From sequence record NC_023557.1: a stretch of 64,000 nucleotides of DNA. One strand, given 5' to 3'. The translations under genes and the position numbers were made by a program. The notes under the pieces were generated by a model. It saw nothing but the letters and a program-made list of their open reading frames with translations, ran no database searches and had not been told where the DNA came from. This document shows positions 631 to 63,946 of the stretch, piece by piece (within the stretch, counting starts at the first letter, position 1; the number at the start of each line of letters is the position of its first letter).

Positions 631-668
631 AAAAGACCAGGGGGCTTACTCCTTGGTCTTTTATGCTT
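631..668 (+). terminator. Hairpin followed by TTATGCT variant motif
   Basis: AAAAGACCA/TGGTCTTTT stem with inner G-U pairs, right after the helicase stop; pyrimidine tract follows. Confidence 0.7.
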
Positions 669-703
669 TCTTTCCTTTTCTTTTTGTTAAGGATACACAG
701 CTT

Positions 704-1030
704 ATGAATGGTAACCGGCCAGTAATGGTGATTGGCGGCATGGGGTTGAGTCCTGCATTGATTGAGCGCTTACGACAGTTAGACGACCTGGAGATCAAAT
801 TGGTGGCCGATGTGGCAATCAGCGATATCCTGGAGTTTGAACCGGGTTATGCTCGCGGCTTGGTTCAGGCGATTCAGCATCAGCAACAACGTGAGTGGAA
901 TCCCTTCCGGGAAAGCTACTGGGATAACTTCATTACCCTGCGTCGTAAAGAGGTCAATGGACATACCAGCATTCCGCCTAAGAAAGCCGCCTGCAGCTCC
1001 CGTCGTAAGGGACGGAGGTTCAAGGGATGA
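704..1030 (+). CDS. Hypothetical protein, basic C-tail
   Basis: AAGGA RBS before ATG 704; the listed TTG start at 653 lies inside the terminator. Confidence 0.7.
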   Translation: MNGNRPVMVIGGMGLSPALIERLRQLDDLEIKLVADVAISDILEFEPGYARGLVQAIQHQQQREWNPFRESYWDNFITLRRKEVNGHTSIPPKKAACSSRRKGRRFKG

Positions 1031-1350
1031 GCGAGATCGATTATCGTGCATTGAAGTATTGTGTCACCAAGGTTAGTCGACGTATCCGCGACGGGGATTC
1101 CCGTAACGCGTCACGTTGCCTCTTCCAGTATGTTGAGACGCACGCCGCATTACAAGACATGGCCGCCATTGATCGTCTTTTAGCACAGTGCCGAGAAAAT
1201 AAGGTACCCCTAAAAGAGATCAACAAAGTCTCGTTACTGCGTGCATGCTCATGTTTACGCCCCCACCTTACAGAGTATCAGTCGTGTATGGACCTGTGGC
1301 GCCAGGACATTAAAGCGGCGGGTATGGAAAACTTATTAATAGGATTGTGA
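1027..1350 (+). CDS. Hypothetical protein
   Basis: ATGA overlap with the upstream gene; 107 aa. Confidence 0.7.
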   Translation: MSEIDYRALKYCVTKVSRRIRDGDSRNASRCLFQYVETHAALQDMAAIDRLLAQCRENKVPLKEINKVSLLRACSCLRPHLTEYQSCMDLWRQDIKAAGMENLLIGL

Positions 1351-1351
1351 T

Positions 1352-1714
1352 ATGTCTGATTATTGTGCGGATATCTTTAAAGCGATCAGTTGCAAAACCC
1401 CCACCAAAGGCAGTGAACTCTACATCGATGATTTCGGTGATCTGTGGATGTTGATTCCCAAGCTTAACCGCTTCGGTGAACAGTCAGTGTTTCGTCAGTA
1501 TGCCGGTAACCTTGCGTTGATGGCTGACCGCGGGCAGATGTATCAGGGTCAGTTATATGTGTGTGAGTTGATCCCGGGATATCACTTGGTGTTAACCAAC
1601 CAAGCCGTGATGGTCAACCAATACAGCCTGGTGCAGTATGTGAAGACCCGTGCTGCGAAAGTGGAAGCGCGCTACCGTAAGAAACCCAAGCCGATGAGCC
1701 GAGCTTACGCGTAA
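1352..1714 (+). CDS. Hypothetical protein
   Basis: AGGA RBS, tight operon packing; 120 aa. Confidence 0.7.
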   Translation: MSDYCADIFKAISCKTPTKGSELYIDDFGDLWMLIPKLNRFGEQSVFRQYAGNLALMADRGQMYQGQLYVCELIPGYHLVLTNQAVMVNQYSLVQYVKTRAAKVEARYRKKPKPMSRAYA

Positions 1715-1744
1715 GCAACCTGACTGACAAGAAAGGATAGACCT

Positions 1745-2254
1745 ATGTTCGAATGGTTCTCTGTGTTATTGATGAAGTGGTTGACCCGAAAGGAAAAGAA
1801 ACACAACAGGACAGTGCGGGTAGAACCGGTGGTGTTTGAACCGCAACTCAAACCCACCCCACAACCACTGAGCAACGCGTTAAAAGAAGAAGCGCAGCAG
1901 ATTCGGGACACCCTGCTGTTTGAGTCGCCGTTGAATAAATCCCGACCGATCCCGACCAAACCCACCTTACGGGTAGTAAGACCCAGTACAAGCTCCTCAC
2001 GCCCACACGGTAAGGCGAACGATGACAGCATGCTAACACATGCCTTATTGATGCAGCAGGTGTTAGCAGACGATACAGCGGCGTCTGATCGTCATCATCG
2101 TACCCATGCCCCTCAGGATAACCACCGCCATGAAGACCGACCCTCGTACCATTCCACGCCCACTCATCATAGCAGCCCTGGTAGTAGTCGCGATGATGAT
2201 AACGGGAGTAATGATTACAGTAGCGGACCTAGTGACAGCGGTTCGTCTGATTAA
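1745..2254 (+). CDS. Hypothetical protein with His/Ser/Asp-rich low-complexity C-tail
   Basis: AAGGA RBS; ends ...SSGPSDSGSSD. Confidence 0.7.
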   Translation: MFEWFSVLLMKWLTRKEKKHNRTVRVEPVVFEPQLKPTPQPLSNALKEEAQQIRDTLLFESPLNKSRPIPTKPTLRVVRPSTSSSRPHGKANDDSMLTHALLMQQVLADDTAASDRHHRTHAPQDNHRHEDRPSYHSTPTHHSSPGSSRDDDNGSNDYSSGPSDSGSSD

Positions 2255-2293
2255 CACCCTCGATTAACCTTACGTAATAAGGAACGCCTCACC

Positions 2294-3202
2294 ATGACAG
2301 ATCCCCACCCCATTCTCGCCGCAGCCATCGGAGAGCCCCAGGATGACGATTGCTGGGATTTTCCGGGCGAGACTGTTGTTGGTCACGGTGACTTGATGTA
2401 CACCAACGTCCATAAGCCTCAGGCGTTATGGAACGGTGTTATCCGGTCACTGCGAAAACGTTTCCTTACTGAACCGCCAATTAACCAAAAGGATACTTGT
2501 ATGACCGAGCAATACAAGCCATTGCCTGACACCGGGTACCAAAGCCCTTTCTGTGAGCCCGATGTTCTCAACACAAACGACCGGATTTATCCCCGCAAGA
2601 GTCTGGTAGCCTTACTGGAGAAATTCCCCTCCGATAATTTTCGTGGAACACCCGCAGTTCGCTATCCTTTTATGCGCCGTCTGGCGGTGTTGTTTAAGAT
2701 AGCGTTCTTACAGACCAGCCTTGACCAGAAGGCTTTATCCTTGAATACACGCCAGACCGGTAAGCCACGGATCACGCATCATTCATTAACTGGTATCTGT
2801 AATTTAATGCACCAGCTGCATTATGAGCTCAGAGAGCTTCAGTATCAGAACCCCAATCCGATTGACCTGACCCGTTACCTGAAACTCTTAACCGGTAAGG
2901 ATGTCTGGGAGAAGCCGGGTGTGGGTGCCTGGGGTAGTGAATTTACCATGCTCTATTTTCATCGTCATCAGGCAGGTGTCGGTAAATCAATGTTCTACAA
3001 CATGCTACCAAAAATCAAACTGCACCTGGCGGGTATTCATGCGACGTTCGGTGGTCGGCCGTGGATCTATAAGAGTAATTGCAGGGGTCCTGCTGGCTTC
3101 TGGCCTGCCACGATTGAATACGGTATGGCGCATAATGGGCCGGCCATCACTGCTCAGTTAAATCGCGAGCGTCTGGTGAAACCTAAGAAAGGAAAAGCAT
3201 AA
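2294..3202 (+). CDS. Hypothetical protein with a possible second start at 2501
   Basis: RBS before both ATG 2294 and the in-frame ATG 2501. Confidence 0.7.
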   Translation: MTDPHPILAAAIGEPQDDDCWDFPGETVVGHGDLMYTNVHKPQALWNGVIRSLRKRFLTEPPINQKDTCMTEQYKPLPDTGYQSPFCEPDVLNTNDRIYPRKSLVALLEKFPSDNFRGTPAVRYPFMRRLAVLFKIAFLQTSLDQKALSLNTRQTGKPRITHHSLTGICNLMHQLHYELRELQYQNPNPIDLTRYLKLLTGKDVWEKPGVGAWGSEFTMLYFHRHQAGVGKSMFYNMLPKIKLHLAGIHATFGGRPWIYKSNCRGPAGFWPATIEYGMAHNGPAITAQLNRERLVKPKKGKA

Positions 3203-4341
3203 TGGCACTGGATCAAGAGTATTATGAAAAGGCATTGGGCATCCTACTGACCAAAGGTTTCTCTAACCAAGAAGCTGACCAGATCGCCACCACGCTTTCG
3301 GTATATCTCCCGATGCGTTTCATCAAAGCTGGTGTATGGGCACTCATGCCTTACGACCAGCATCCGGCTGACCCCCTGGCATTTAAACACATGCGGCTAC
3401 TCGACCGTATCCCTGAGTTAAAGAAACCAGTGATCCTTCAAATGCCGACTGACTTTACTTACACCACGTATGGTCAGGAGTATTGCCCTGGTGCTGACGC
3501 ACCGACATACACCACAGGACCCGATGGTTATACACATCATCCGGTTGGTTGGGAGAGTGGCATTACTGGCATGCCAGGCGCAATGGGTCCGGCTGGGGAT
3601 GACAATATTGAAGTCAGTGATTTGACCTGTGATCACCCCCAAGGCGATTTTAGACTATCGTTACCTGCCGAATCAATGGTTAGTCAGTTTACCGTCGTCA
3701 TGCGGGTTGGTGGTAAACCTATTAAAATGACGCTGGAAGAACTCATCCAGGAAATTGGAGGTTATGACAAACTTCCTGCTTCTGCACGTGCTGCGATTGA
3801 TCGTGTCATGGAAGAGCATCGCAATGCCCCTGTAACTACTGTATCTGTGCGCACACCCTTACCAGGCGGAGTATCTCAGGAGCAGGCTGACTATCTGAAA
3901 CTGGGCGACCTCAGCGACATCGAAGGGATCAAACGGGCTTACCCGCTCATCGACGAGAAAACAGCTGAACGGATGTCTAAGTTGCATTGTCAGCTTAATC
4001 AGCATATCGCGCGGGTTCATCGTGAGCCGAGAGACGTTGAGGTATTTGATCTGCTTGCGGGCGATCACTCTCAGCGGATGTTCCAATCTCGTCATGCTAA
4101 ACGTCAGTACCCAAACAGTTTGTTTGAGAAGTTCCTGCCGGATCAAGCAGACATCGATGAACCCGAGGGCATGACTGTTAAAATCAAAACCCACAGCGTA
4201 CGTCACTTCGGACACGGTCTTGAAATTAGCACGCCTTTGTTTGGCCAATCCCACAAAAACCCTACTGGACCACAAACCATGCCGGGGCTTGAGAAAGGCC
4301 GTGATGGTAAACGTAAACGTAATAAGAAGGGCAGACGATGA
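3202..4341 (+). CDS. Hypothetical protein, basic C-tail
   Basis: TAATG coupling; 379 aa; ends GKRKRNKKGRR. Confidence 0.75.
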   Translation: MALDQEYYEKALGILLTKGFSNQEADQIATTLSVYLPMRFIKAGVWALMPYDQHPADPLAFKHMRLLDRIPELKKPVILQMPTDFTYTTYGQEYCPGADAPTYTTGPDGYTHHPVGWESGITGMPGAMGPAGDDNIEVSDLTCDHPQGDFRLSLPAESMVSQFTVVMRVGGKPIKMTLEELIQEIGGYDKLPASARAAIDRVMEEHRNAPVTTVSVRTPLPGGVSQEQADYLKLGDLSDIEGIKRAYPLIDEKTAERMSKLHCQLNQHIARVHREPRDVEVFDLLAGDHSQRMFQSRHAKRQYPNSLFEKFLPDQADIDEPEGMTVKIKTHSVRHFGHGLEISTPLFGQSHKNPTGPQTMPGLEKGRDGKRKRNKKGRR

Positions 4342-5111
4342 TCGATCGCAGTTTTGAAGGTGGCTGGGAGTCTATACTGCAATGGCATGGGTTTGCTGAT
4401 CGTGCTAAACAGGGGCTGTCTGAGCACTTTGTTATCGTGGATTACGGAACCCAGGCAGAGGCCGCCGCTTTTGAGCAATTGACAGCGCTGGCGGAGAAAG
4501 TGAAGTATGTCTCAGTCGAGCGAGTTAAAGCCGTTGACTTTACCCCGACGCTTGTACGTACGCTACATGAACGTGAACATGGCTGGCATTACTGTCATGT
4601 CATGGGGCGATGTGGTTACGGCGGCCACGGGATAATGATCGGTGATAATGGCGGCTGGACAGGCGCGCACGGCGGTGCAGGTGATGCAGGTCAGCCCTCA
4701 ACACCTGATGATGGCTCGATACTATACCAGACAGATTACAGTAGTCTCGGTATCCAGGACCGAGGATTTACTACGCTGCAAGACATGATGGAAAATGCCA
4801 GCCCTTACGATTACCCTCGGGAGATTCGTATAGTAGGGGATCGGCATGACCCGGATGTCAAAGCGTTAACGCAGGCGGTGATAAAGCTTGTTGGGCGTCG
4901 AGCTATCAAAGTAGTTAGCATACCGCATGCCGACATGATGTATAGACCCGGCCCGCACCGAACGTATAACCTCGCGCCGGAGAAATACCGGGAGCGATTT
5001 GACATTGCTTATAAACAAGCATTAGAAAATGTCAACAAGGCGGCCATCCTACCGTATGCCCGTGGGCCATTGCAGTCTGTTCTGGCGACTCAACGCAAGA
5101 AACACTTTTAA
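4338..5111 (+). CDS. Hypothetical protein
   Basis: ATGA coupling; 257 aa; Gly-rich middle segment. Confidence 0.75.
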   Translation: MIDRSFEGGWESILQWHGFADRAKQGLSEHFVIVDYGTQAEAAAFEQLTALAEKVKYVSVERVKAVDFTPTLVRTLHEREHGWHYCHVMGRCGYGGHGIMIGDNGGWTGAHGGAGDAGQPSTPDDGSILYQTDYSSLGIQDRGFTTLQDMMENASPYDYPREIRIVGDRHDPDVKALTQAVIKLVGRRAIKVVSIPHADMMYRPGPHRTYNLAPEKYRERFDIAYKQALENVNKAAILPYARGPLQSVLATQRKKHF

Positions 5112-5138
5112 TCAGTTCCCCTCAACAGGAGAGTAACC

Positions 5139-5444
5139 ATGTGTAACATGCGATCGGATTGGTTTGTAGAAGACGAACCGTCCATGAAGGAAAGTGATCC
5201 GCATTTCGACAACAAAGCAATGGATGGCTTGATGGCAAAGATCCGTGACTTTGTTAAAGAGAGTGATGCGGCGACCTATGTCCCGCAAGCCCTGTTTGGC
5301 GAAGCCGGTAAAGTTAACCTGTCCAAAGTGGCAGCAGTAACCCGTCCGGTCGATCACCTCATTACCCTGAACCCAGTGGCCAATGACGGTGATGTGTACC
5401 TGGACTTCGCGCGAGGGAAGCGACGTGGATATAAACCCCACTGA
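5139..5444 (+). CDS. Hypothetical protein
   Basis: AGGAGAG RBS; 101 aa. Confidence 0.7.
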   Translation: MCNMRSDWFVEDEPSMKESDPHFDNKAMDGLMAKIRDFVKESDAATYVPQALFGEAGKVNLSKVAAVTRPVDHLITLNPVANDGDVYLDFARGKRRGYKPH

Positions 5445-5655
5445 AGTTAACATCGAGCAGGCCAATCGTTATGAGGGGTCTACCGATGATTTGGTCCAGC
5501 AAGCTAATGATCGTGGTTTTCTCCAGGGGATTCGTATCACTTCTGGCGAGGACATCGATCCAAGCATTTGGACGCCTGAGAAGATCGAAAAGTTGAAAGC
5601 TGCACTTCGACATATTCGTGACTCAGAACAACGCATCAAAGGTAGCCAGGGGTAA
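5425..5655 (+). CDS. Small hypothetical protein
   Basis: GAGG RBS before GTG 5425, in frame with the listed ORF 5383; ends at the terminator. Confidence 0.55.
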   Translation: MDINPTEVNIEQANRYEGSTDDLVQQANDRGFLQGIRITSGEDIDPSIWTPEKIEKLKAALRHIRDSEQRIKGSQG

Positions 5656-5673
5656 CACCCTGGCTTTATGCCG
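5644..5673 (+). terminator. Hairpin plus TTATGCCG
   Basis: AGCCAGGG/CCCTGGCT stem followed directly by TTATGCCG. Confidence 0.7.
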
Positions 5674-5693
5674 GTTTAACGAGGACGTGTAAC

Positions 5694-6149
5694 ATGGAAT
5701 CGAGCGGTTTGATTACGCTGGCAATGCTCTTTTTAACCTTCGTCATCGGGTTGTGTTGTTGGCTGACGCGTTTCATACGCTATCACACCAACCGCTACAC
5801 CGTTGACACCAAGAAGGCATTAAAGCAATTTGCCTGTAAGCTTGAAAGAGTACTGGATGTCCCGCAGCCGTATTCGCTGGCACAAAGCGAAATGACAAGG
5901 CTGGATAATGAACTGAACGCTTCTCTCTTCCTCTTTGAAGAGATCACAGGGAAGATCCACGATGAAACCAGTCGACTGTACCTGGAGTCAAGTTTCATGG
6001 TGGTGCGCGGCACTCAACACGATACCCCGATTCGTATCTGTGTGGCGAACACAATCTTCAGCCTGTCAACGACTAACCACAATCACCACAGCGTCATGAA
6101 GGTCATCAACGACTTTAATAACCGCTTGGCTAAAATTGTAGAAAGTTAA
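5694..6149 (+). CDS. Membrane-anchored hypothetical protein
   Basis: GAGGA RBS; N-terminal hydrophobic helix LITLAMLFLTFVIGLCCWL. Confidence 0.7.
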   Translation: MESSGLITLAMLFLTFVIGLCCWLTRFIRYHTNRYTVDTKKALKQFACKLERVLDVPQPYSLAQSEMTRLDNELNASLFLFEEITGKIHDETSRLYLESSFMVVRGTQHDTPIRICVANTIFSLSTTNHNHHSVMKVINDFNNRLAKIVES

Positions 6150-6163
6150 GCACAGAAAAACTC

Positions 6164-6176
6164 AGACCTATATCAC
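6164..6176 (+). promoter_or_regulatory. Candidate phage promoter motif, variant AGACCTATATCAC
   Basis: Resembles intergenic copies at 13822, 54081 and 63962. Confidence 0.35.
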
Positions 6177-6224
6177 GCCCGTGATAGACCCCTCAACCCC
6201 CATTAATCTTAAGTGAGTTCAATC

Positions 6225-6665: not shown

Positions 6666-6678
6666 AAGGAAAACAATT

Positions 6679-7388: not shown

Positions 7389-7421
7389 AGGCAGGGGGAC
7401 TACTCTCTGCCTTTATTTTTT
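7389..7421 (+). terminator. Canonical intrinsic terminator
   Basis: AGGCAG/CTGCCT stem followed by TTATTTTTT. Confidence 0.75.
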
Positions 7422-7492
7422 GTGGTATTCTGCCACAGAAAACTACTGGCCATACTGCCAGTGGTATTCACTCAATAGACTGCGAGGAATAA

Positions 7493-8467: not shown

Positions 8468-8519
8468 CGGCATATAGGCCCTCCGTTACGGAGGGCCTTT
8501 TATGACATCTTTTTTTTTT
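8468..8519. terminator. Bidirectional terminator at a convergent junction
   Basis: CGGCATAT, 10-bp perfect stem, TTTATGAC, then T10. Confidence 0.8.
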
Positions 8520-11593: not shown

Positions 11594-12505
11594 ATGAGTG
11601 ATTTTACTGACTTAACGAAATTGAAGACCGAATTACCACAAAACATCCAAAAGATTGATGAGCAGGATGATGTGGGTGACTTCAGCGATCTTAACGACTA
11701 CCTCATGACCATCATTCCGGATGAACGGCGTGAGCGCTTGATCGCGATCTGTCAAAACTTGAGTACCCTGCAGTATCATCAAGTCCAGCCCGATGTGGAT
11801 CGGTTACTAATGATGGCTAACGACGGTGAAGCGCCGTCGGTGCTCGATGACTTGACCCGGTTGTTATTTGAACACGCTTATGACTTAACGAAAAACATGG
11901 GTTTTAACTGGGCCGATGAGATTGAGTTTGATCAGCTGTTCCTGCTCGGTGATGTAATCGAAGGTGCCATGTTGATTGATGGCATGGAAGACTACGGCGA
12001 CCTCTCAGCGATCCTGGATGGGGATGACTCAGTTGAAGAGAAGGTGGTGGATATCTGGGGCCAGGTGCTCGACAAAGACATGCACCATCTCTTTGAACAG
12101 ATCCAGTCCATCGAACCGGCGGTGATCAGCGGGATCAAACAAGTCACGACCCGACCGTATGCCGAAGACGATTATGCAGATGTGCAGCGTCCACTTGAGT
12201 TTGTGGTTGAGCGGTTGGTGAAAGTCCGTGAAATGATGAAGACCGATGGCGTTGCTTACCAGCATGTGGCCAAGGGCGGGGCATTAGGCGTTGAGCTCGA
12301 TTCACTGATCACGCTATACACCCCTGAGTTGAATGCCGTGACCGATCCGATCGAACTGACCGACCTGCTGGTTGCCTTTACCCTGATCAGCAACACCCCA
12401 GATGGTTTGGTGAAATCCACCGCATCCCGGCTGGCAGAAAAATGGATTGATGATATCGAAGTCATCAATGTGGTAGGTAAACATATCGACAGGTATCCCG
12501 TGTGA
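11594..12505 (+). CDS. Acidic conserved hypothetical protein coupled to the RNAP subunit
   Basis: 303 aa; GTGA overlap with the beta-prime gene. Confidence 0.75.
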   Translation: MSDFTDLTKLKTELPQNIQKIDEQDDVGDFSDLNDYLMTIIPDERRERLIAICQNLSTLQYHQVQPDVDRLLMMANDGEAPSVLDDLTRLLFEHAYDLTKNMGFNWADEIEFDQLFLLGDVIEGAMLIDGMEDYGDLSAILDGDDSVEEKVVDIWGQVLDKDMHHLFEQIQSIEPAVISGIKQVTTRPYAEDDYADVQRPLEFVVERLVKVREMMKTDGVAYQHVAKGGALGVELDSLITLYTPELNAVTDPIELTDLLVAFTLISNTPDGLVKSTASRLAEKWIDDIEVINVVGKHIDRYPV

Positions 12506-13812
12506 ATATTCGCGACTATTTAATCATGGCCTTTCGGGCAGGGGCTTACAAGCAACGCCAGTGGGTGTTGAGTGTCATGAGTATCACCCAGACCCCGGAT
12601 GGTAAATCCGTAGCAGACAGTATGATCCCGTATCAGGCACACCGCATCAACATCGGTGCGACACTCGACTGGGCTTACTGGGATGACTTCAACAAAACCT
12701 TTGTGCCGATTGAGGGAGTGGATGTTAACTTCCCGTTGTTTCGACCCGAGGATCAATACACACTACAACCTGGGGATTTCGCCAATGTCACTGAAGAAGT
12801 TACTACTACTTTCGGCCGTATTCTGGCTAACCATTATTATTTTATCGATGTGGTCGGTGAACGTGTCCCCTTTCAGAACGTAGAATTCAACCGCGGGATG
12901 CTGGAGAAGATCTACAAGGCCCGGGTATTAGAAGACGCCCAGGACTTGCGGCGTTCTGATCCGTTCTACCTGACCGTCGATGAATTCAAACGCTCCGTGG
13001 ATAATGGCTTTGCCTTGGGTGGGTTGTCGAAACTTTGTGTACCGACTGCCTGTCCGGAAACCATGTATCCGCCGAAGTTCATCATCGAGATGCGTGACCG
13101 TCTGTTTGAAGAGCACAAGGATGAGCTCAACAACCCGGTGGTCATGGGGCGTATTCAGGATGAGCTGTTAAAGCACTACCGTGAGTTCCTAATGTCCACC
13201 CCGTCAGCCAAGTTCTTTGTGATCAAGAAGACCATCGACCAGGCCTTCAACAACATGTTCTTGACCGGCGGTATTGCCGGGGCTTTTGGTGGTAACACTG
13301 TTATTACCAACTCGCTGTACGAAGGCTGGAACCTGAAGAACTTCCCGGCGTTAGTGAATGGCTCTATCGAAGCTTCCTTTGACCGTGGTGCGGCTACAGC
13401 CGACGGTGGTGAGAAAGTGAAGATGTTGATCCGTGCCACGCAGAACATCCGTATCACCGATGATGATTGCGGCACCCAGCTCGGGGTACCGTGGGTGATT
13501 GAAGATGCCGGCAAGGCACGCTTCATTAACTCTTACATACTGGATAAGGGTGTGACGATTCTGTTAACTCCGGAGAACATTGATAAGTTCGTCGGTAAGC
13601 CGGTCATGACCCGTTCACCCAGCTTCTGTAAGAAATCCCATGGCGACTCCTGTAAGTTCTGCGTCGGTGCGCATAACGCCACCAACCCACGCGGGATGTC
13701 TTCCGGTACCTCGAAGATCGGTTCTACCCTGATGTTGTTATCGATGAAAGCGATGCATAAAGGCAGTAAGATCGATCTGATCGAGTATAACCTTGATGAG
13801 GTCTTTAACTGA
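12502..13812 (+). CDS. Split multisubunit RNA polymerase beta-prime fragment (phiKZ gp80-like virion RNAP by synteny)
   Basis: Bridge-helix-like DRGAATADGGEKVK, DDCGT, Zn-site RSPSFC..CKFC, trigger-helix-like GSTLMLLSMKAMH. Confidence 0.85.
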   Translation: MNIRDYLIMAFRAGAYKQRQWVLSVMSITQTPDGKSVADSMIPYQAHRINIGATLDWAYWDDFNKTFVPIEGVDVNFPLFRPEDQYTLQPGDFANVTEEVTTTFGRILANHYYFIDVVGERVPFQNVEFNRGMLEKIYKARVLEDAQDLRRSDPFYLTVDEFKRSVDNGFALGGLSKLCVPTACPETMYPPKFIIEMRDRLFEEHKDELNNPVVMGRIQDELLKHYREFLMSTPSAKFFVIKKTIDQAFNNMFLTGGIAGAFGGNTVITNSLYEGWNLKNFPALVNGSIEASFDRGAATADGGEKVKMLIRATQNIRITDDDCGTQLGVPWVIEDAGKARFINSYILDKGVTILLTPENIDKFVGKPVMTRSPSFCKKSHGDSCKFCVGAHNATNPRGMSSGTSKIGSTLMLLSMKAMHKGSKIDLIEYNLDEVFN

Positions 13813-16911: not shown

Positions 16912-17018
16912 TCGGCATATATTCTGTCTCGTTAGCGTAAGCTCGCTAAAAACCCTTTTAAAGTTTTGTATAACAAACTATCAACTTTGTAGAAAGAAAC
17001 AAATAGGAAATTAATCTC

Positions 17019-20583: not shown

Positions 20584-20598
20584 TTGATCATTTGATCA

Positions 20599-20649
20599 GC
20601 ATAAGGAGAGGCCTCGCGCCTCTCCTGTTTATGCCGTCTTTTTTTTTTT
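20599..20649. terminator. Bidirectional terminator GCATAA-stem-TTATGCCG-T11
   Basis: AGGAGAGGC/GCCTCTCCT stem at a convergent junction. Confidence 0.8.
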
Positions 20650-21744: not shown

Positions 21745-21774
21745 CGGCATAACGGAGCAGGCAACGCCTACTCC
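21745..21774 (-). terminator. Hairpin plus TTATGCCG on the minus strand
   Basis: Stem GGAGTAGGC/GCCTGCTCC pairs fully (U-G wobble) only on the minus strand. Confidence 0.7.
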
Positions 21775-22849: not shown

Positions 22850-22872
22850 CGGCATAAGGGAGTGGATACCCT
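22850..22872 (-). terminator. Short hairpin plus TTATGCCG after the polymerase subunit gene
   Basis: CGGCATAA on the plus strand with a weak AGGG/CCCT stem. Confidence 0.45.
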
Positions 22873-22901
22873 GACCGTAGCCAAGGCATCCACGTGGTGC
22901 G

Positions 22902-29243: not shown

Positions 29244-29295
29244 CGGCATAAAGGCCTGGCCCTCCGCAAGGAAGGCCAGAGCCTTGCTTATGCCG
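29244..29295. terminator. Bidirectional terminator CGGCATAA-stem-TTATGCCG
   Basis: GCAA-loop stem at a convergent junction; the right arm includes the stop codon of the minus gene. Confidence 0.8.
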
Positions 29296-38998: not shown

Positions 38999-40369
38999 AT
39001 GTCCGCGATTAATGACTTTCTATTTACTGCGGGCATGGAGGGGTTTAACGACCCCTCCTCTATACCGCCCGTTGGTATAGTTGTGCCCTTTTTTGGTGTT
39101 GAAGAGTTCGCCGAAGCGGATGCTGAACAATCTGTACGCATGACAGAGATGAACCAGCAAGCTGAAGCGATTCAACGCCTGCAACAAACGCTGGTCTACA
39201 TCAACGCTCACCGTCCGACCTTTGACCGTGAGAACGCCGCTGTCGTGCAGCAAGCGCTGGGTGAAGTACAGGTACTGATGCCCGACATGGAAGACCCGGT
39301 CACCATCATGGGGTCGCTGGAGCATTATACCCCGGCTTACACCAACCACCTGCTTGCGCACGGTATTGAAGGCATTGGTGATAAGATCCTGAGCGTGGTC
39401 AAGAAGATCATCGAACTCTTGAAGAAAGGTTATGCCTTCTTGAGTAAAGCCATCCAGGCAAAGGGTGTGGTCTTCGGTAAACAGAAGCGCGAACTCGATG
39501 ACCTCAATGCGTGGTTTAAAGAGCAACGCAAAAGCAACGATAAGCCCGCTACCACCGCCGGCAATGAACCTAAGGTTGTTACGATCACTGCCCCGACCTA
39601 TCTGTACACCGTCGACAGTAACAAACCGTTAGCGGCAGATCGCTTAGCAAGCGAAGTGGCAAAGTACAACAAATTCCTGCAGGCCTTCTCGGTTGATTTC
39701 ATCCGGGCGCATATTACCCTGGGCGATCTCTATATTCGTGCACTGGGCGGTCTGGATATTGCCAGCACCAGTAACGAAGAGTTGTTCACCAAGATGTTTA
39801 AGGGTCAGTTTAAATACCAGGCCTCGGGTGCATCGCTGTACACCAAACGCAACGGCGAGATGTGTGATATCGAAACAGTTGGGTTGATTGGCGGGATTGG
39901 CTTTAAAGCCTCCATCGCGAATATCCTGGTCGCACCGCTTGAGATGACTGCAGACGGTTCTAACCAGCGTAAGTTCTTCAAGCAGATGAACGGGTTATAC
40001 AACTACAGTTTTGTCTCCAAAATAAAAATGGATGGCAGTACGGTAGGGAATACCCCAATCTATGCTTGCAGTCTCGCTGACGCTGAGCGGCTGGTGAATC
40101 AACTTGATATGTTGACCAACTGGATGATTAACAGTCAACACGACGAAGAGATCCGTGACTTTAATAAGCGGGTGACTGAGTGTGTGGATAAGCTGGCTGA
40201 TCGTGCCGGTCGTCTGGGTAATGACCGCAGTGATTTTATCACCACTGTGATCAACGCTTTGTCTGGTATCTCCAGTGGTCTGGAAAATGTGTCCCGTGGC
40301 ATGAATCAGCAAACGAACACATTGATCAACAACTTGCGTGAGTACGTTACCAAATCCACGAAAGCGTAA
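38999..40369 (+). CDS. Head paralog family protein
   Basis: TAGMEGFN leader; SLE and GIE sites; LIGG motif. Confidence 0.75.
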   Translation: MSAINDFLFTAGMEGFNDPSSIPPVGIVVPFFGVEEFAEADAEQSVRMTEMNQQAEAIQRLQQTLVYINAHRPTFDRENAAVVQQALGEVQVLMPDMEDPVTIMGSLEHYTPAYTNHLLAHGIEGIGDKILSVVKKIIELLKKGYAFLSKAIQAKGVVFGKQKRELDDLNAWFKEQRKSNDKPATTAGNEPKVVTITAPTYLYTVDSNKPLAADRLASEVAKYNKFLQAFSVDFIRAHITLGDLYIRALGGLDIASTSNEELFTKMFKGQFKYQASGASLYTKRNGEMCDIETVGLIGGIGFKASIANILVAPLEMTADGSNQRKFFKQMNGLYNYSFVSKIKMDGSTVGNTPIYACSLADAERLVNQLDMLTNWMINSQHDEEIRDFNKRVTECVDKLADRAGRLGNDRSDFITTVINALSGISSGLENVSRGMNQQTNTLINNLREYVTKSTKA

Positions 40370-41868: not shown

Positions 41869-41904
41869 TTAGGGGGAGAGGGGTTTCCCTCTCCTCTTAT
41901 ACCG
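41869..41904 (+). terminator. Hairpin plus TTATACCG variant
   Basis: Purine/pyrimidine stem GGAGAGGG/CCCTCTCC after the 40463 gene. Confidence 0.65.
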
Positions 41905-44264: not shown

Positions 44265-44604
44265 TAACAGTAACAAGGCGCTGTACAATGCAGCGCGGTT
44301 GCCTGTTCTTTACGAGTACCCGCATGACTTCACCCCGTATGCTCGTTTACTGGCTAACGAGAAGCAAGGTGCACAACCTTCGCAGGCGTTTGCTGAGATG
44401 CTGGCTAAGGTAACGGGCGATCCCTGGACGATGACCCCTAAGCAGCCGTATACCCTGTACGGCGCCAAGGTGACGTTGATTGGTGAGAACCAACCCAACT
44501 TCCCAACCAGTAAACGGTTTCCTTACGTCCTGGTGTTGCAGTTGAGTACCCGGTATCAAGAACGCAAGTTATACCTGAGTTTTAAGATCTTGAAATCGAG
44601 CTGA
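44257..44604 (+). CDS. Small conserved hypothetical (putative virion) protein
   Basis: GGAGG RBS before ATG 44257. Confidence 0.7.
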   Translation: MTDNSNKALYNAARLPVLYEYPHDFTPYARLLANEKQGAQPSQAFAEMLAKVTGDPWTMTPKQPYTLYGAKVTLIGENQPNFPTSKRFPYVLVLQLSTRYQERKLYLSFKILKSS

Positions 44605-44641
44605 GCATAAGGAGAGGGCGTTTGCCCTCTCCTCTATGCCG
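44605..44641. terminator. Bidirectional terminator GCATAA-stem-CTATGCCG
   Basis: 10-bp stem AGGAGAGGGC/GCCCTCTCCT at a convergent junction. Confidence 0.8.
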
Positions 44642-57242: not shown

Positions 57243-57248
57243 CTTTAA

Positions 57249-57280
57249 GCAGGAGTAAGGAAACTTACTCCGCTTATGCC
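57249..57280 (+). terminator. GAAA hairpin plus TTATGCC
   Basis: GGAGTAAG-GAAA-CTTACTCC. Confidence 0.75.
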
Positions 57281-57305
57281 AATTTAATTTAACCGGACGT
57301 GTATC

Positions 57306-58213: not shown

Positions 58214-58220
58214 ACTTAAT

Positions 58221-58289
58221 CGGCATAACCCCCTGAGAGAGAAGCGCAATGCTTCTCTCTCAGGGATGCCTGAATCTCTTTTTTTTTTT
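58221..58289. terminator. Bidirectional terminator CGGCATAA-15-bp stem-ATGCC-T11
   Basis: CCCTGAGAGAGAAGC/GCTTCTCTCTCAGGG perfect stem. Confidence 0.85.
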
Positions 58290-58409
58290 AGTCTGGTTAA
58301 ATATAGTGGATAGAGAATTAACTTGAATAACAAAAAATAAAGCAAAGTAATATCAACGCCGGTAAGGGCTACAACAGTTGTTCTAATTTTCAGGCACGTA
58401 GCCTAGGAG

Positions 58410-58449
58410 AAAAAAAAAAGGAGGAAGCAGCTTATCCAGTTACTTCCTC
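58410..58449 (-). terminator. Canonical terminator of the helicase gene
   Basis: GAGGAAG/CTTCCTC stem plus T10 on the minus strand. Confidence 0.65.
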
Positions 58450-58490
58450 AAAAACGTTATTTCTCGTCGTCCCCATTCTGGGACATAGTA

Positions 58491-60023
58491 TTACCCAAAC
58501 CACGGAGCTCCACCGCCATCAGAGTTTGTCTCTCCGGCAACGTGCTTACGGGATTTGTCCTTTCCATTCACATCATCAAGAATACCGACTCCAGGTTCGA
58601 ACTTGTAAACGCAATATTTATCACGCTCAGGTGTAATCGAAATGGTGCGATGCTTACCGCGCTGAATGCACAGATAAGACTCTTCACCAACACGGACAAT
58701 ATGGATAATCATTTCCACATCGACTTCTTGGTCGATCTTGGTACAGTTATCCCAATAACCTTTATTCGCTGTTTCACGTGGAAGGTCTTCTTCGAGACCG
58801 TTACGGACCAGCATCTTCGCAGCAGGACTCAACTGATGCGGAGTAATGACACAGATACCACGAGCTGACGTAAAGTTACGGACACGACGGAAAAGATCAC
58901 GGTACTCTTGTCCCGCAACACCTTTCTCGCAACCTTCTTTACTGAACATCCCCAGGTAGTCGATGGTTAATAGATGAATCTCATAGCCCATGTTCTCAAA
59001 GTGCTTGATACGCTCAAAGAGATTACGGTAACCAAACTGCGATGGGTTAACACGACAGAAGTTGACTTCATAACCGTTAATAGACAAGGCGGCTAAGACT
59101 TCACGGGCTGCTTCCGCTTCATCTACTGTCTGATGGTTATGATCCAGGCCATCGATGTTTGCTTTGATCTTCTTCCACCACAGAACCATGTTGTCGGTCA
59201 TGTTGTTTTCAGAAGAGATGTGCATGATCATCGGTTTCTTCTTCGGATCACGCATGTACGGTTTGTTAAAGGTAGCGATCTGACGTGTCAGGTCCATGGT
59301 GAAACCGGTCTTGTTGTTGTGCTGCAATGCACCAATCAAGACGAACTCACTGCGACGGAACCCACCCACTTCACCCAGCATGCGGTTGATGCCGGTGTAG
59401 CCTGTCTTTAATACCCCAAGCGTAGAAGACTCTTCTTTCGCTTGCTTAAAGATCTTACCCACTTCTTCCAGGTTACTGACTGTAATGTCAGAGATCACCG
59501 CTGGGTCAAACTGTTCAGAGACGCCGATGTTAACCGTTTCGATCTCTTCTAAGAGCTTGACCACCGCAGAATCCATGTCGATGTCTTCACCGCCAAAGAT
59601 GATAGGTGCTGCAAACCGCTTGATGATGGCCTTCGCCCGACGGTGCTGATCCCACTTACGCAGTTCACGTCCAATGGCAACCACAGACTGTTTGGCTTTG
59701 TAAGGATCATCCTCGGTGCTGCTGACACCCATTTCTAAGGCTTGGTAAGTTGCCGCGTCATGACCGCAGTCAGTTAACAAGCGTTGAAGCAGATCAGTTT
59801 TATCCAGTGGTTGATTCTTAGGACGACTAATCATCCAGCGAATAGTACGGCGTAAAGCCAGCTGTACATTGCGGGATTCGTCATCACCTGTACCTTCAAC
59901 AGGGGTCGGAATGTTATCCAGGAGCTCATCAACGAACTCACTGCTGTCATCGCTGTCAGTGCCAACAATGGACTCTTGATAAAATAACGTAATAATCTTT
60001 ATGAGTAATAGAACGGTTTCCAT
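58491..60023 (-). CDS. dnaB: DnaB-like replicative helicase
   Basis: GAGG RBS before ATG 60023; Walker A variant GALQHNNKTG, Walker B LLTIDY, TPHQLS motif. Confidence 0.85.
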   Translation of the reverse strand: METVLLLIKIITLFYQESIVGTDSDDSSEFVDELLDNIPTPVEGTGDDESRNVQLALRRTIRWMISRPKNQPLDKTDLLQRLLTDCGHDAATYQALEMGVSSTEDDPYKAKQSVVAIGRELRKWDQHRRAKAIIKRFAAPIIFGGEDIDMDSAVVKLLEEIETVNIGVSEQFDPAVISDITVSNLEEVGKIFKQAKEESSTLGVLKTGYTGINRMLGEVGGFRRSEFVLIGALQHNNKTGFTMDLTRQIATFNKPYMRDPKKKPMIMHISSENNMTDNMVLWWKKIKANIDGLDHNHQTVDEAEAAREVLAALSINGYEVNFCRVNPSQFGYRNLFERIKHFENMGYEIHLLTIDYLGMFSKEGCEKGVAGQEYRDLFRRVRNFTSARGICVITPHQLSPAAKMLVRNGLEEDLPRETANKGYWDNCTKIDQEVDVEMIIHIVRVGEESYLCIQRGKHRTISITPERDKYCVYKFEPGVGILDDVNGKDKSRKHVAGETNSDGGGAPWFG

Positions 60024-60027
60024 TATG
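60024..60027 (+). promoter_or_regulatory. Candidate late promoter core TATG upstream of the gp119-like gene
   Basis: Position equivalent to the phiKZ late promoter P119L (TATG consensus, from recall). Confidence 0.45.
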
Positions 60028-60051
60028 CCCCTCGTTATAAGGTAATTAACC

Positions 60052-60681
60052 ATGTACAATGAAAAGTTGGTAATTGTGCCAGCGCCAATCCTTCGGGCTA
60101 TTCACAATGCAAAAGAAAGTGAAGCAATTTTAACGTGTCCGAAAAGAATGCTTTCCATATTATCCAGACGTGATGTCATTTTCTACTACGTGGTGAATAC
60201 TCTTCTTTGTGACTATTCCTATAAAGCAGACCCAGCCAACCCAGAACCACCATTGGTGTCGGCGCTGCGGGATCTGTTGTCACACACTAACGGCGTAATG
60301 AATGCCTTTACCTCGCCGGCGTGGGTTGCGTTTGTTGATGAGAACGACGCCGATATCCAAAGTGAGCGTCGACTGAAAGCGCGTAGTATCTATGAGTACC
60401 TGACTGGTGAACCGTATGCATGGAATTCAACAGAAGGTGACGATTCTTTAAGCTATATCTATGACACCCAGGCGAAAGTCGTGGGAGGTGAAGCCGTTGC
60501 AGTGTTGATTAATGCTGTGAAGGAGAACGATAGTTACAATATCATCAGTCATCAACGTTTATTCGAACAAACCATTCTGGCGTTCACTACACTGACAGCA
60601 GACACCAAAAGCTTTGCTTCCCTTTATAAAGGCTTTTGTGAACTGGTTTACCAAGACTCGCTAATCCGACGTTTTGCGTAA
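60052..60681 (+). CDS. Conserved protein preceding the capsid gene (phiKZ gp119-like by synteny)
   Basis: TAAGG RBS; lies between DnaB and MCP. Confidence 0.7.
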   Translation: MYNEKLVIVPAPILRAIHNAKESEAILTCPKRMLSILSRRDVIFYYVVNTLLCDYSYKADPANPEPPLVSALRDLLSHTNGVMNAFTSPAWVAFVDENDADIQSERRLKARSIYEYLTGEPYAWNSTEGDDSLSYIYDTQAKVVGGEAVAVLINAVKENDSYNIISHQRLFEQTILAFTTLTADTKSFASLYKGFCELVYQDSLIRRFA

Positions 60682-60823
60682 GAATCTATGTAATAGTATG
60701 TAAATTGCCATTTCGATGGCGGCGTACTGTTATGACCGTGTGTTAGCGCGACACAACCCCCTGTTTATGTACATAGACAGGTAATATCGAAAACTTATAT
60801 AAGTTATTGAAGGAAACAACGAA

Positions 60824-63091
60824 ATGGCATTGAAACTTCTGCATGTAGCTAAAACCGCCGACATGCTGTCACGCATCCAATCTCAGATCAATGGCGGCCA
60901 TGCATCAGGCGACGCTACCGCGGTTAAAAGCTACGGTATGGAGTCGCTTGACGGCAACACTCTGGGCGCGCAGGAAACCGCCATCAAAAATGGTATCTCT
61001 GTCATTACCGACGTGATCGCTCAGGGCACTGCATCTCAGGGCCAGAGCTACGCCGGTAACGGTCTGGAAGGTTTCTCTGATGCACAGATCCAAGCGGCAT
61101 CAATCGCACTGACTATCGGTGGTGACTTCCAGGGTTACATCGGTGCACTGAAAAACAACTCTAACCGTGCCATGTCTGCATCTGACCTGAGCCTGGTTTC
61201 CGGTAGCCGTTACGGCTCTGCTAACATGAAGCAGGGTTACGGTACCGAAGCTTTCGAACAGGCGCAGAGCTTTGTTCCTCAGCAGAACGCAACGGTTGAA
61301 TACAACCTGAAAGCGGCTAAGCAGGATGCCGTTGGTGAAGCCTTCTTCCCAACTACTACCCTGACGCCAAACGACATCGGCCTGAGCGTAACTGTGCCGG
61401 TTGACATCGTTGAACCTTTCATCAAGCACAAAGCAAATGGCGAAGTGACGGATTGGCAGCGTAAGAAGCTCATCAACGCAATGCGTGACCCGACCATTCT
61501 GCGTAACGACGCGATCAAGCTGATTCCTTATCGTCCACTGGACGGCAGCAACGACGCACAGTTCGCAGTAGGCGTGCCGAAGTTCAACGAAATTCAGGGC
61601 GGCGAAGAAGTACCAACTGGTGCACTGAAGCCTGGTATCAAAATCGGTTTCATGGGTCTGTGCTCTACTCCGTCTCTGGTTCAGGCCGGCGCGCTGGAAG
61701 CATCTGATCAGATCGACACCGGTGCTCGTCTGCAGTACATCTGGATCGAAGTAGCTAACGCCTCTGGCACCAAAGAGCTGTTCAAGCTGCGTACTGATCA
61801 CCTGGATCGTTCTACTTTCCAGAAATCTCAGGAAGGCGATAAGTTCGAGACGTCTCTGGACTTCTCTAACATCACCATCGCGCTGAACGACCTGAACAAA
61901 ACCACCGACAACACCGATTCAGCTCTGCTGGCTCCGTTGGTGACTTCTGGTCAGCAAGCGATCCTGGCGCTGGATATCAAAGGCACCATGAACCACGAGA
62001 AAGGCAGCCTGGTAGTTAACTCGCTGACTAACCCGTCTATCATCCGTGTTTACGATACCGTGGCTAAAGAAGATGCGAACACCAAGTCTGGTGCTCTGCG
62101 TGACGCAATCGACGCTCTGACGATCACCTTCAAAGGTTACTTCGTCCGCGCTAACCTGCGTAACAGCAACTTCCGTACCCGCGAGCAGCGTGTTGACCGC
62201 CAGACTTCCGTGTACAAGTACATGGTACAGCTGGGCGCACCAATCACTGCTATCGCTCCAGTAACTGACGCATGGGGCCCGAAAGAGTCTATCGCAGTTG
62301 AAACCCTGAGCAACGCAACGTATGCACGTAACTCCGCAATGGCTATCAGCCGTCTGCTGGACTACGTTGAAACCATCCGTGATGCAGGCGTGACCAACAA
62401 CGGTCTGTGGCAGCGTTACGATGAGAACAGCATCGAAGGCGTTGGTAAAGCTGTAGTTGATCCATGGTACGGCGAAGGTAGCTTTGACATCTCTAAAGTT
62501 GTCAACGGTGTTAAATCTTCTCAGACCCGCGACGACGTTTCTGAAAAGATCCTGAACATCCTGCGTACCTACGCATACCGCATGAACGCCGAGTCTGGCT
62601 ACAACGTTGCACTGCAGATGCTGTACAACGAAGTTCAGCCAACGCTGGTTATCGCAACCGACAACATCATCGCGCAGTACCTGATGGAAGTTGGTGACCT
62701 CCGCACAGCTGGTATCAGCTTCAAAGTGCACGTGGCCACCACCAACAACATCGAGATGCGCGGCAAGATCATCATGACCCTGTCTCGTATGAAGTCAGGC
62801 GGTCTGGATCTGCTGACGTTCGGTATGCACCTGTGGGTGCCTGAGATCGTAGCAACTGTTAACGTAATGCGTAACGGTACCTACATCGAAGAAACCATGG
62901 TGCAGCCGCGTAACCTGCACGTAGTGGTTTGCCCAATCGTGGCGAACATCACCATCACCGGTCTGGAAGATGCGTACACCGGCAAGATCACCGTCCCAGT
63001 TGACGTTGTGAGCATGCCTGAGTCTGCTGGCGCCCAAGACCTGGGTGGTCTGAACACTACTCCGGCAACTACTACCAACCCTGCTGCGTAA
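60824..63091 (+). CDS. Major capsid protein
   Basis: 755 aa; GME40, GLE82, GTE142 maturation sites; strongly biased codons; GEAFFPT and QPRNLHV motifs; phiKZ gp120 synteny. Confidence 0.9.
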   Translation: MALKLLHVAKTADMLSRIQSQINGGHASGDATAVKSYGMESLDGNTLGAQETAIKNGISVITDVIAQGTASQGQSYAGNGLEGFSDAQIQAASIALTIGGDFQGYIGALKNNSNRAMSASDLSLVSGSRYGSANMKQGYGTEAFEQAQSFVPQQNATVEYNLKAAKQDAVGEAFFPTTTLTPNDIGLSVTVPVDIVEPFIKHKANGEVTDWQRKKLINAMRDPTILRNDAIKLIPYRPLDGSNDAQFAVGVPKFNEIQGGEEVPTGALKPGIKIGFMGLCSTPSLVQAGALEASDQIDTGARLQYIWIEVANASGTKELFKLRTDHLDRSTFQKSQEGDKFETSLDFSNITIALNDLNKTTDNTDSALLAPLVTSGQQAILALDIKGTMNHEKGSLVVNSLTNPSIIRVYDTVAKEDANTKSGALRDAIDALTITFKGYFVRANLRNSNFRTREQRVDRQTSVYKYMVQLGAPITAIAPVTDAWGPKESIAVETLSNATYARNSAMAISRLLDYVETIRDAGVTNNGLWQRYDENSIEGVGKAVVDPWYGEGSFDISKVVNGVKSSQTRDDVSEKILNILRTYAYRMNAESGYNVALQMLYNEVQPTLVIATDNIIAQYLMEVGDLRTAGISFKVHVATTNNIEMRGKIIMTLSRMKSGGLDLLTFGMHLWVPEIVATVNVMRNGTYIEETMVQPRNLHVVVCPIVANITITGLEDAYTGKITVPVDVVSMPESAGAQDLGGLNTTPATTTNPAA

Positions 63092-63118
63092 GCACCAGGC
63101 GCGAGAGTAATCCGTAGC

Positions 63119-63158
63119 GCATAAACAGAGGAGGAGCATTGCTCCTCCTCTTATGCCG
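63119..63158 (+). terminator. GCATAA-hairpin-TTATGCCG after the capsid gene
   Basis: 11-bp stem AGAGGAGGAGC/GCTCCTCCTCT. Confidence 0.8.
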
Positions 63159-63196
63159 TGTGATTTTATAGAGGCACACACCAGGGGCGGATAGTA

Positions 63197-63910
63197 ATGC
63201 TTGAATTACTAATGATAGGAAGGAAGAAAGCAACAGGGGGTGGGATACCTGCAGATCTTGGACCAGGACCTGCCTCCATGCTTGGGTATTACGAACGACC
63301 GGATGGCGGTAACTCGGGGTACTTCGGTACCTTTACTAATTTTGTTTCAACAGCTGGGTTATGTCAATCTATCGGGTTAACTGCAGGCTATCAGCAAACT
63401 GAGAATGCCACTTGGCATAAGTTTCTGTTAGATGGTAAGATCCTCTTTATACCAACCAACTATATCGTGCGTAACCTCCATTGGAACTACATTTATAATG
63501 CCGGGGCAGTATATGGGGATGACAGTTTTGGTCTTTATCAAAGCCCAACGCCAACAGCACAGAGTGCCAAGCATGTGACGGTGGATGGTCGGGTTTATCG
63601 CGTGCGGTTAGTATCTATCTCAAATGGTGATCCGGCTCTGACAGGCCAAATCGATAAAACCACCGAATGGGGTCGGTTGATGTATCCGATTGATCCAACG
63701 GTAGATGCTAGTAATACTGAAGCGGGTAAGAAATGGGGTAACGTGGGACTGCTTTTGAGTTCAACGCAGATTCTGGCAAAGGAGACCTACGCCAGCACAC
63801 CTGCTAGTAGCCTGGTTGTGGTTACGAATTCTACGACACGCTCCGCTCAATCTAAATCAACCGCACCCAGTAACTGTACCTGGCGTCCTATTCTTGAACT
63901 TGTGCAGTAA
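63197..63910 (+). CDS. phiKZ-like paralogous virion (tail-associated) family protein
   Basis: GPGP..L..GYFG, WHKFLLDGKILFIP, YRVRL, EWGRLMY and WRPILELV family motifs. Confidence 0.75.
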   Translation: MLELLMIGRKKATGGGIPADLGPGPASMLGYYERPDGGNSGYFGTFTNFVSTAGLCQSIGLTAGYQQTENATWHKFLLDGKILFIPTNYIVRNLHWNYIYNAGAVYGDDSFGLYQSPTPTAQSAKHVTVDGRVYRVRLVSISNGDPALTGQIDKTTEWGRLMYPIDPTVDASNTEAGKKWGNVGLLLSSTQILAKETYASTPASSLVVVTNSTTRSAQSKSTAPSNCTWRPILELVQ

Positions 63911-63915
63911 GCTCT

Positions 63916-63946
63916 AAGAGGAAGGCTCCGGCCTCCTCTTATGCCG
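63916..63946 (+). terminator. Hairpin plus TTATGCCG
   Basis: AAGAGGAAGGC/GCCTCCTCTT stem. Confidence 0.7.

Follow-up and report, generated by a model that had tools for sequence, protein, structure and literature searches.

What ends transcription at the gene ends of Erwinia phage Ea35-70, where hairpins are followed by a short conserved sequence, usually in place of a U-tract? The question is raised by the final 64 kb of the phage genome (NC_023557, 271,084 bp, genus Agricanvirus), referred to here as the window, in which position 1 corresponds to record position 207,085. The window holds 69 annotated genes and 5.2% non-coding DNA. Ea35-70 is a phiKZ-like, nucleus-forming jumbo phage that encodes phiKZ-like multisubunit RNA polymerases (RNAPs); a beta-subunit gene is annotated at window 12502-13812, and a homologue of GP123, a protein of the phiKZ non-virion polymerase, is encoded at genome 1041-2729 (blastp 3e-50). 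We find that the hairpins and their tails are probably factor-independent (intrinsic) transcription terminators of phiKZ type, a reading that projects RNA ends mapped in a related phage onto the Ea35-70 sites. Judged by its sequence, the element is a member of a terminator class published in 2024, in a new genus, and most of what it represents is already known.

A conserved tail behind gene-end hairpins

All 14 of the intergenic hairpins listed in the initial annotation are present (Table 1), and 16 strand-specific folds of these sites gave minimum free energies (MFE) of -14 to -36 kcal/mol, with z-scores of -2.7 to -7.8 relative to shuffles. TTATGCC, the motif with which they had been associated, occurs 17 times in the window compared with 6.9 +/- 2.6 in shuffled sequence, and no shuffle reached 17. 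The full octamer, TTATGCCG, has 9 copies in the window, all at gene ends; 8 are intergenic and 1 overlaps the stop codon of a convergent gene. Its intergenic density there is ~146 times its coding density, so the motif is far from being equally frequent in coding DNA. Genome-wide counts were made on the whole Ea35-70 sequence, assembled from the record, and gave 41 octamers as opposed to 10 for a reversed-pattern control. A copy was scored as coupled to a hairpin if its upstream side carried a stem of 6 bp or more whose end was no further than a few nt from the octamer. A hairpin lay directly upstream in 34 of the 41 copies (83%), or 39 of 41 counting two imperfect stems seen by eye; the baseline was 1.8% of random positions and 0 of 10 reversed-pattern control sites. 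Rfam covariance models returned no match in the window at the gathering score.

The element consists of a stable stem-loop immediately upstream of the tail. Its stem is variable in sequence, GC-rich and 8-16 bp long, the commonest loop is 4 nt, and 1-3 bases, mostly T, separate the stem from TATG. Under a looser definition, a hairpin plus TATGYY, the genome contains 69 elements. Alignment on TATG places T before it in 83% of cases, followed by C (92%) at +1, C or T (100%; C in 77%) at +2, and G (71%). The tail thus follows the pattern TTAT-K-Y-Y-G; the last T of the phiKZ consensus is found in 31% and is not conserved. A tail of this kind is common to the listed sites, as had been described, but it is less fixed than first thought, and several sites hold variants and not the exact octamer: 631 (TTTTATGCT), 8468 on the plus strand (TTTTATGAC), 15383 (TTATGCCC), 41869 (TTATACCG), 44605 (CTATGCCG) and 57249 (TTATGCCA). 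Likewise, the UUCG, GAAA and GCAA loops singled out earlier do occur, in 3, 3 and 2 of 72 cases, but the real feature is the tetraloop in general (33/72). The proposal of strand-specific G-U pairing was borne out: in the sense strand G-U pairs outnumber A-C pairs by 26 to 10 (p = 0.011), a modest bias that is expected of an RNA hairpin formed in one direction and therefore points to function in RNA.

The tail does stand in place of a U-tract. TATG is found within 9 nt at 56% of strong gene-end hairpins, and at least 6 T in the next 8 nt at only 9%; the Ea35-70 elements lack the tract of ~6-8 U that directly follows the stem of a canonical terminator. We also considered whether the tail is conserved merely through pairing with a complementary left flank, and this was ruled out. 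A CGGCATAA-like flank is present in only about one quarter of copies and the tail is kept at unidirectional sites; because most copies have no complementary left flank, the tail is not just an extension of the stem.

Orthologous sites were compared in Erwinia phage AH06 (~80% identical) and three metagenomic relatives. Paired positions of the stem change together, or the stem is replaced with pairing kept, and TTATGCC is invariant. The 8468 stem carries a compensatory change in AH06 (GGC..GCC to GGT..ACC). At 57252 the stem sequence has been replaced in four relatives with pairing kept and the tail CTTATGCC invariant, and at 63916 the entire stem sequence has been swapped, again with pairing kept. 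In these alignments, selection acts on structure in the stem and on sequence in the tail. Such a pattern bears on the idea that the elements are dispersed palindromic repeats at the DNA level, comparable to REP elements and devoid of a transcriptional role. Near-identical copies do exist at three genome sites, and the DNA assembly of a related strain skips 788 bp between two copies. Nonetheless, the orientation of the tail strictly follows that of the upstream gene, stem sequences vary from site to site yet still pair, G-U pairs are biased to the sense strand, and RNA ends have been mapped at the homologous motif in relatives, all of which makes a repeat of this sort extremely improbable.

Position and orientation provide a further line of evidence for terminators. 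As first described, the tail is on the 3′ side of the stem when read along the upstream gene; it mostly lies 27-67 nt past a co-directional stop codon. The claim that it appears on both flanks at convergent junctions holds for 8468, 20599, 29244 and 44605, but not for 58221, where only the minus-strand flank carries it. Among annotated junctions in the window, elements were found at 5 of 5 convergent and 0 of 5 divergent ones. Genome-wide, using our own gene caller, an element was present at 37% of convergent gene ends, 11% of co-directional ends and 1 in 34 divergent regions. Sixteen of the 41 octamers point into a convergent gene 2-15 nt away, and a co-directional gene is next downstream in 24. 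This arrangement, with elements placed 3′ of stop codons, facing the same way as the gene before them and bidirectional where genes converge, points to termination, not initiation.

The probable site of RNA release

Terminators of this appearance have been described in two relatives. In phiKZ, cappable sequencing on the Oxford Nanopore Technologies (ONT) platform (ONT-cappable-seq) yielded 61 predicted intrinsic terminators with the common motif 5′-BCCYCCCCHWWDGGGRRGGBYTTATKYYGT-3′, in which a TTAT region comes after a stem-loop (Putzeys et al. 2024, Microlife, PMC10914365). In phage 201phi2-1, motif A, present in 59 of 132 terminators, is closely similar to the phiKZ motif (Microb Biotechnol 2024, PMC11512511). 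A scan of gene-end hairpins recovered the same T-TATG-Y-Y-G(-T) logo in Ea35-70, phiKZ, 201phi2-1 and Goslar, and the Ea35-70 octamer can therefore be regarded as the Agricanvirus form of the published motif. Our literature search found no description of the motif for Ea35-70 or Agricanvirus.

The 201phi2-1 data allow the point of release to be located. We placed eight published termination coordinates on the genome sequence and all fell at hairpin-(T)TATGNN|G, 8 nt past the stem. The 3′ end was exactly two bases after TATG, with G next, in 7 of 8 cases and one base earlier in the remaining one; two of the eight read exactly TTATGCC|G. It follows that the conserved G is the base not added, and that release occurs at the distance of ordinary intrinsic termination. 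In a two-colour terminator trap in uninfected P. chlororaphis, the same eight strong 201phi2-1 sites all terminated transcription, four of them better than lambda T0 and two equally well (PMC11512511). Host polymerase was thus stopped without a phage factor. This result divides the earlier suggestion of a phage-RNAP-specific termination signal: a termination signal acting through an RNA hairpin stands, but specificity does not, since the homologous elements stop host RNAP in uninfected cells. Our reading by analogy is that the Ea35-70 elements, too, would not be restricted to phage polymerases.

For Ea35-70 we infer the RNA ends, the exact 3′ end and the pause mechanism as follows. A GC-rich RNA hairpin would form behind the polymerase, the next 7-9 nt would read (U)UUAUGCC, and release of the transcript would come between the second pyrimidine and the conserved G (TTATGCC|G). 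A weak start of the RNA-DNA hybrid would result from the short U/A stretch, and the step from pyrimidine to G is like the elemental pause signal known for multisubunit RNA polymerases; the weak hybrid and the Y|G step may jointly replace a long U-tract. At convergent pairs, one hairpin with a tail on both flanks would stop both transcripts. The consensus of the elemental pause, from native elongating transcript sequencing (NET-seq) in E. coli in 2014, is reportedly G(-10) Y(-1) G(+1). The mapped 201phi2-1 ends agree with it in having a pyrimidine as the last RNA base and G next in line; nine positions upstream, 62-86% of the copies in phiKZ, 201phi2-1 and Goslar carry G.

Several points weigh against this account. 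The base at pause position -10 differs in Ea35-70, where it is C in 67% of copies because the 5′ arm is purine-rich. The polarity of the stem is accordingly reversed, with a purine-rich 5′ arm (GGAGAGG) and a CCTCTCC 3′ arm in Ea35-70 and a pyrimidine-rich 5′ arm in phiKZ, 201phi2-1 and Goslar. A weak hybrid and a Y|G pause alone leave the strong conservation of the full T-A-T-G unexplained. ONT termination sites are accurate to ~2 nt, and the strand of the 201phi2-1 sites was taken as plus because their contexts fit. The simple gene caller behind our genome-wide junction statistics, based on open reading frames (ORFs), recovered 63 of the 69 annotated stops in the window. Finally, the sole public RNA-type run comes from a relative that is <90% identical and consists of assembled contigs only. 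One 3.2-kb contig from that run contains the gene before the capsid gene and the capsid gene itself and ends ~100 nt past the capsid stop, which fits a terminator-ended unit but is too weak to count.

A different origin for the 3′ ends has also been proposed, in which the element serves RNA processing, stability or protein binding, for example by a factor that exports mRNA from the phage nucleus, and the ends arise post-transcriptionally. A fixed single-stranded sequence beside a variable stem is typical of RNA elements recognised by proteins, and ONT 3′ ends alone cannot separate termination from processing. The homologous 201phi2-1 elements, however, block a downstream reporter in uninfected cells with no phage factor, and their 3′ ends lie 8 nt past the stem, a normal distance for intrinsic termination. 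RNase E sites are AU-rich, and a cut at C|G is unlike them. In addition, several chimallivirus genera that have the same nucleus use T-runs and do without the tail. A processing or RNA-binding role is not needed to explain the data, and we consider it very unlikely.

Promoters, the GP123 pocket and the spread of the tail

The tail contains TATG, the core of the phiKZ late promoter, in which +1 is at the G (Yakunina et al. 2015, PMC4666361), and the initial annotation had raised coupled termination and re-initiation as an alternative. The element would then be both terminator and late promoter, with the non-virion polymerase restarting on the G of TATG and going on into the next gene, and a co-directional gene is indeed next in 24 of 41 copies. 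In bacteria, promoters and terminators are reported to be coupled (bioRxiv 10.64898/2026.08.19.745784). The 16 copies that run into the 3′ end of a convergent gene have nothing to drive, though, and with 1 element in 34 divergent regions, the TATG of the Ea35-70 elements is not placed as that of a late promoter driving a same-strand gene that lies downstream. P119L, the validated late promoter of phiKZ, reads TTGCTATGTAGAC, with TATGTAG and not TATGYYG, and has no GC hairpin upstream (oligonucleotides, PMC7618050). TATG is necessary but not sufficient in phiKZ, where downstream sequence shifts activity ~30-fold. Among intergenic TATG sites in Ea35-70, the 61 with a hairpin continue with CCG; the 104 without one show a weak preference, TAA and TAC being the commonest next triplets (12/104). 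A separate promoter-like motif follows several of the terminators. Taken together, these observations make a dual function quite improbable.

Two other motifs of the genome look like promoters. TATGTA(A/C) occurs three times, at 60687, 60697 and 60766, in a 142-nt region upstream of the major head protein gene, and ten more are found upstream of other genes genome-wide; these are candidate late promoters like phiKZ P119L. The second motif, CCTACATTAC, has an AT-rich upstream stretch ((AT-rich)-aCCTACATTAC/T) and is present in 17 copies. All are on the plus strand, and in each case the next gene downstream runs in the same direction; of the 16 copies for which that gene was called, 15 lie 29-206 nt from it. 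The motif is conserved in AH06 and the metagenomic relatives; it resembles the AAanTTACc middle-promoter element of phiKZ and probably serves as an early or middle promoter. Since it often lies ~20 nt past a terminator, terminator and promoter functions apparently reside on adjacent but distinct signals. A per-genome measure of 4-mer strand asymmetry upstream of genes did not recover even the known phiKZ TATG signal.

To describe how widely the tail is used, we scanned 22 phiKZ-like (chimallivirus) genomes, or 70-320 kb parts of them, with T4 and AR9 as controls, and determined what percentage of strong gene-end hairpins have TATG within 9 nt. A capsid-protein search for related loci had given 4 close loci, and the comparison panel was instead built from phage records. 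Shares were high in Psa21 (70%), Ea35-70 and RP31 (56% each), Noxifer (53%), AH06 (52%), phiKZ (45%) and 201phi2-1 (42%), and intermediate, at 29-32% each, in PhiEaH1, Goslar, 2050HW, pEt-SU, RSL2 and SNUABM48. They were near background in PCH45 (8%), YongXC32 (6%), SPFM17 (3%), Huxley (2%) and CR5 (0%); the controls gave 6% (T4) and 2% (AR9). By genus, the tail is present in Phikzvirus, Serwervirus, Tepukevirus, Noxifervirus, Agricanvirus, Ripduovirus and Goslarvirus, and near background in Seoulvirus, Machinavirus, Derbicusvirus and PCH45. T-runs (at least 6 T in the next 8 nt) follow 21-46% of hairpins in the low group; for the T-run chimalliviruses and T4 the values are 27-47% and 29%. Because the low group uses T-runs, the tail is a lineage-specific alternative to the U-tract and is not universal in nucleus-forming phages. 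As far as our literature search showed, this split within the family is new.

T-runs also occur at a distance from the stem. In the window, runs of T10-T11 lie 8-12 nt past the tail at three convergent junctions (8509-8518, 20637-20647 and 58278-58288). In SPN3US-like and Machinavirus phages the T-run is likewise displaced by several nt from the gene-end stem, and information peaks at tail positions 5-12.

The distribution of the tail is relevant to a terminator tuned to the phage polymerase. Here the non-template TATG of the tail would be caught by the pocket in the beta-lobe of GP123 that reads late promoters, pausing the non-virion polymerase 5-8 nt past the hairpin and replacing the U-tract. 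Both late promoters and terminator tails are built around an invariant TATG, the GP123 pocket of the phiKZ non-virion polymerase binds single-stranded non-template TATG (PMC12809450), and the geometry fits, with the G of TATG 5-7 nt past the stem. The 14 published pocket residues were read off alignments at 21-30% identity for the 18 genomes in which we located GP123 homologues. None of the homologues departs from Phe151 or His331, and only two lack Gln466. Residue 406, which stacks on T-3/A-2, tracks use of the tail: at least 30% TATG tails were found in 8 of 9 genomes with Tyr or Phe and in 2 of 9 with Trp or His, in a sample that is small and not phylogenetically independent. The exceptions are YongXC32, with Phe but 6% TATG tails, and PhiEaH1 and 2050HW, with Trp but 31-32%. 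If true, such a mechanism would mean that one protein pocket marks the starts of late transcripts and, after a hairpin, the stops of transcripts, and it would explain why Tyr/Phe-406 genera mostly have TATG tails and Trp-406 genera mostly T-runs. On the other hand, the homologous 201phi2-1 elements stop host RNA polymerase in uninfected cells, and according to the authors of PMC12809450 the transcribing complex has an incomplete pocket. The elements follow genes of all classes, and the virion polymerase must therefore stop there too. The residue correlation is moreover confounded by phylogeny as well as having exceptions, and it rests on distant alignments. We regard capture by the pocket as unlikely, and factor-independent termination at the tail as the better description of the Ea35-70 elements.

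Individual sites and comparison with known systems

The predicted terminators of the window, together with two further hairpins and the promoter-like motif, are listed in Table 1.

Table 1. Putative terminators and a probable promoter motif in the Ea35-70 window (window coordinates unless stated otherwise)
Feature	Position	Strand	Description
Predicted terminator after helicase gene (stop 619)	630..669	+	15-bp stem, tail TTTTATGCT, then T-rich run; MFE -26, z -6.6
Predicted terminator overlapping Ea357_255 end	5644..5673	+	8-bp stem + TTATGCCG; next gene 21 nt on; AH06 has GTTATGCCA
Predicted bidirectional terminator, convergent junction	8468..8508	both	10-bp stem; minus tail ATATGCCG, plus tail TTTTATGAC then T10
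Predicted terminator with UUCG tetraloop	15383..15411	+	tail TTTTATGCCC, identical in AH06
Predicted bidirectional terminator, convergent junction	20597..20636	both	plus tail TTTATGCCG then T11; minus tail TTATGCTG
Predicted terminator	21745..21774	-	9-bp stem + GTTATGCCG
Predicted terminator after DNA polymerase gene	22850..22893	-	12-bp stem + TCCCTTATGCCG
Predicted bidirectional terminator, convergent junction	29244..29295	both	TTATGCCG on each strand; plus copy overlaps Ea357_286 stop codon
Predicted terminator	41870..41904	+	tail variant TTATACCG, identical in AH06
Predicted bidirectional terminator, convergent junction	44604..44641	both	plus tail CTATGCCG, minus tail TTATGCTC; loop inverted in AH06
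Predicted terminator	57252..57281	+	8-bp stem, GAAA loop, GCTTATGCCA
Predicted terminator after DnaB-like helicase gene	58221..58266	-	16-bp stem + GTTATGCCG; MFE -36, z -7.8
Predicted terminator after major head protein gene	63127..63158	+	11-bp stem + TTATGCCG; near-identical copies at two other genome sites
Predicted terminator after Ea357_314	63915..63946	+	imperfect stem + CTTATGCCG; promoter-like CCTACATTAC 20 nt later
Gene-end hairpin of T-run type, beyond the 14 first listed	7389..7422	+	stem + TTTATTTTTTG
Extra element beyond the 14	39037..39069	+	9-bp stem + TCTATACCG; 39 nt inside annotated Ea357_293 start, 74 nt past previous stop
Probable promoter motif CCTACATTAC	13826, 54085, 63966 (genome 220910, 261169, 271050) and 14 more genome sites	+	

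The additional element at 39037 could be an attenuator within the 5′ end of Ea357_293, a member of the internal-head-protein paralogue cluster, or the annotated start of that gene may be too early. Read in the plus direction, the stem at 58221 is followed by ATGCC and T11. At 16912-16945 a minus-strand ATATGCCG tail stands beside a weak hairpin between two plus-strand genes, antisense to local transcription. At the right end of the window, in the DNA assembly from run X3, of a near-identical phage, 63143 is followed directly by 63932. The 788 bp left out (gene Ea357_314) are flanked by two terminators with 15 nt of identical sequence in common. This junction reflects either recombination between repeated terminators or an assembly jump. 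Contigs of runs X2 and X3 break at 63119 and 63159 and continue into a look-alike terminator at genome 170613.

As terminators, the elements would mark the ends of ~60-70 transcription units in Ea35-70 and in its Agricanvirus relatives, which are fire-blight biocontrol phages, and terminator finders based on a U-tract would miss them. Two points are added to the published motif: the RNA apparently ends just before the conserved G, and, within a single virus family, tail and U-tract are alternatives that differ by lineage. Genera with tails and genera with T-runs offer natural contrasts on how non-canonical multisubunit polymerases terminate, and the elements may serve as compact, strong terminators for synthetic biology.

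How does the element compare with known signals? The class II pause/termination signal of T7 RNA polymerase is sequence-specific, independent of a hairpin and read by a single-subunit polymerase. It is similar in that a short conserved sequence helps to stop a phage polymerase, but it is hairpin-free, belongs to a single-subunit enzyme and is unrelated in sequence. The phiKZ late promoter has the same four non-template-strand bases, TATG; it differs in having neither the upstream hairpin nor the YYG that follows, and many Ea35-70 elements have no gene to drive. With canonical intrinsic terminators the element shares a GC-rich hairpin, release 7-9 nt past the stem, function with host RNA polymerase (as seen for the homologous 201phi2-1 elements) and the use of one palindrome in both directions. 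In Ea35-70, however, only UU(A)U is left of the U-tract, and a conserved GCCG comes next. The closest likeness is to the phiKZ and 201phi2-1 motif. In each case a stem-loop, usually with a tetraloop, is directly followed by (T)TTATG-Y-Y-G at gene ends, is bidirectional at convergent pairs and is present in dozens of copies per genome, in phages of one family with two multisubunit polymerases. Where the phiKZ tail allows K-Y-Y, that of Ea35-70 is more rigid, giving TTATGCCG.

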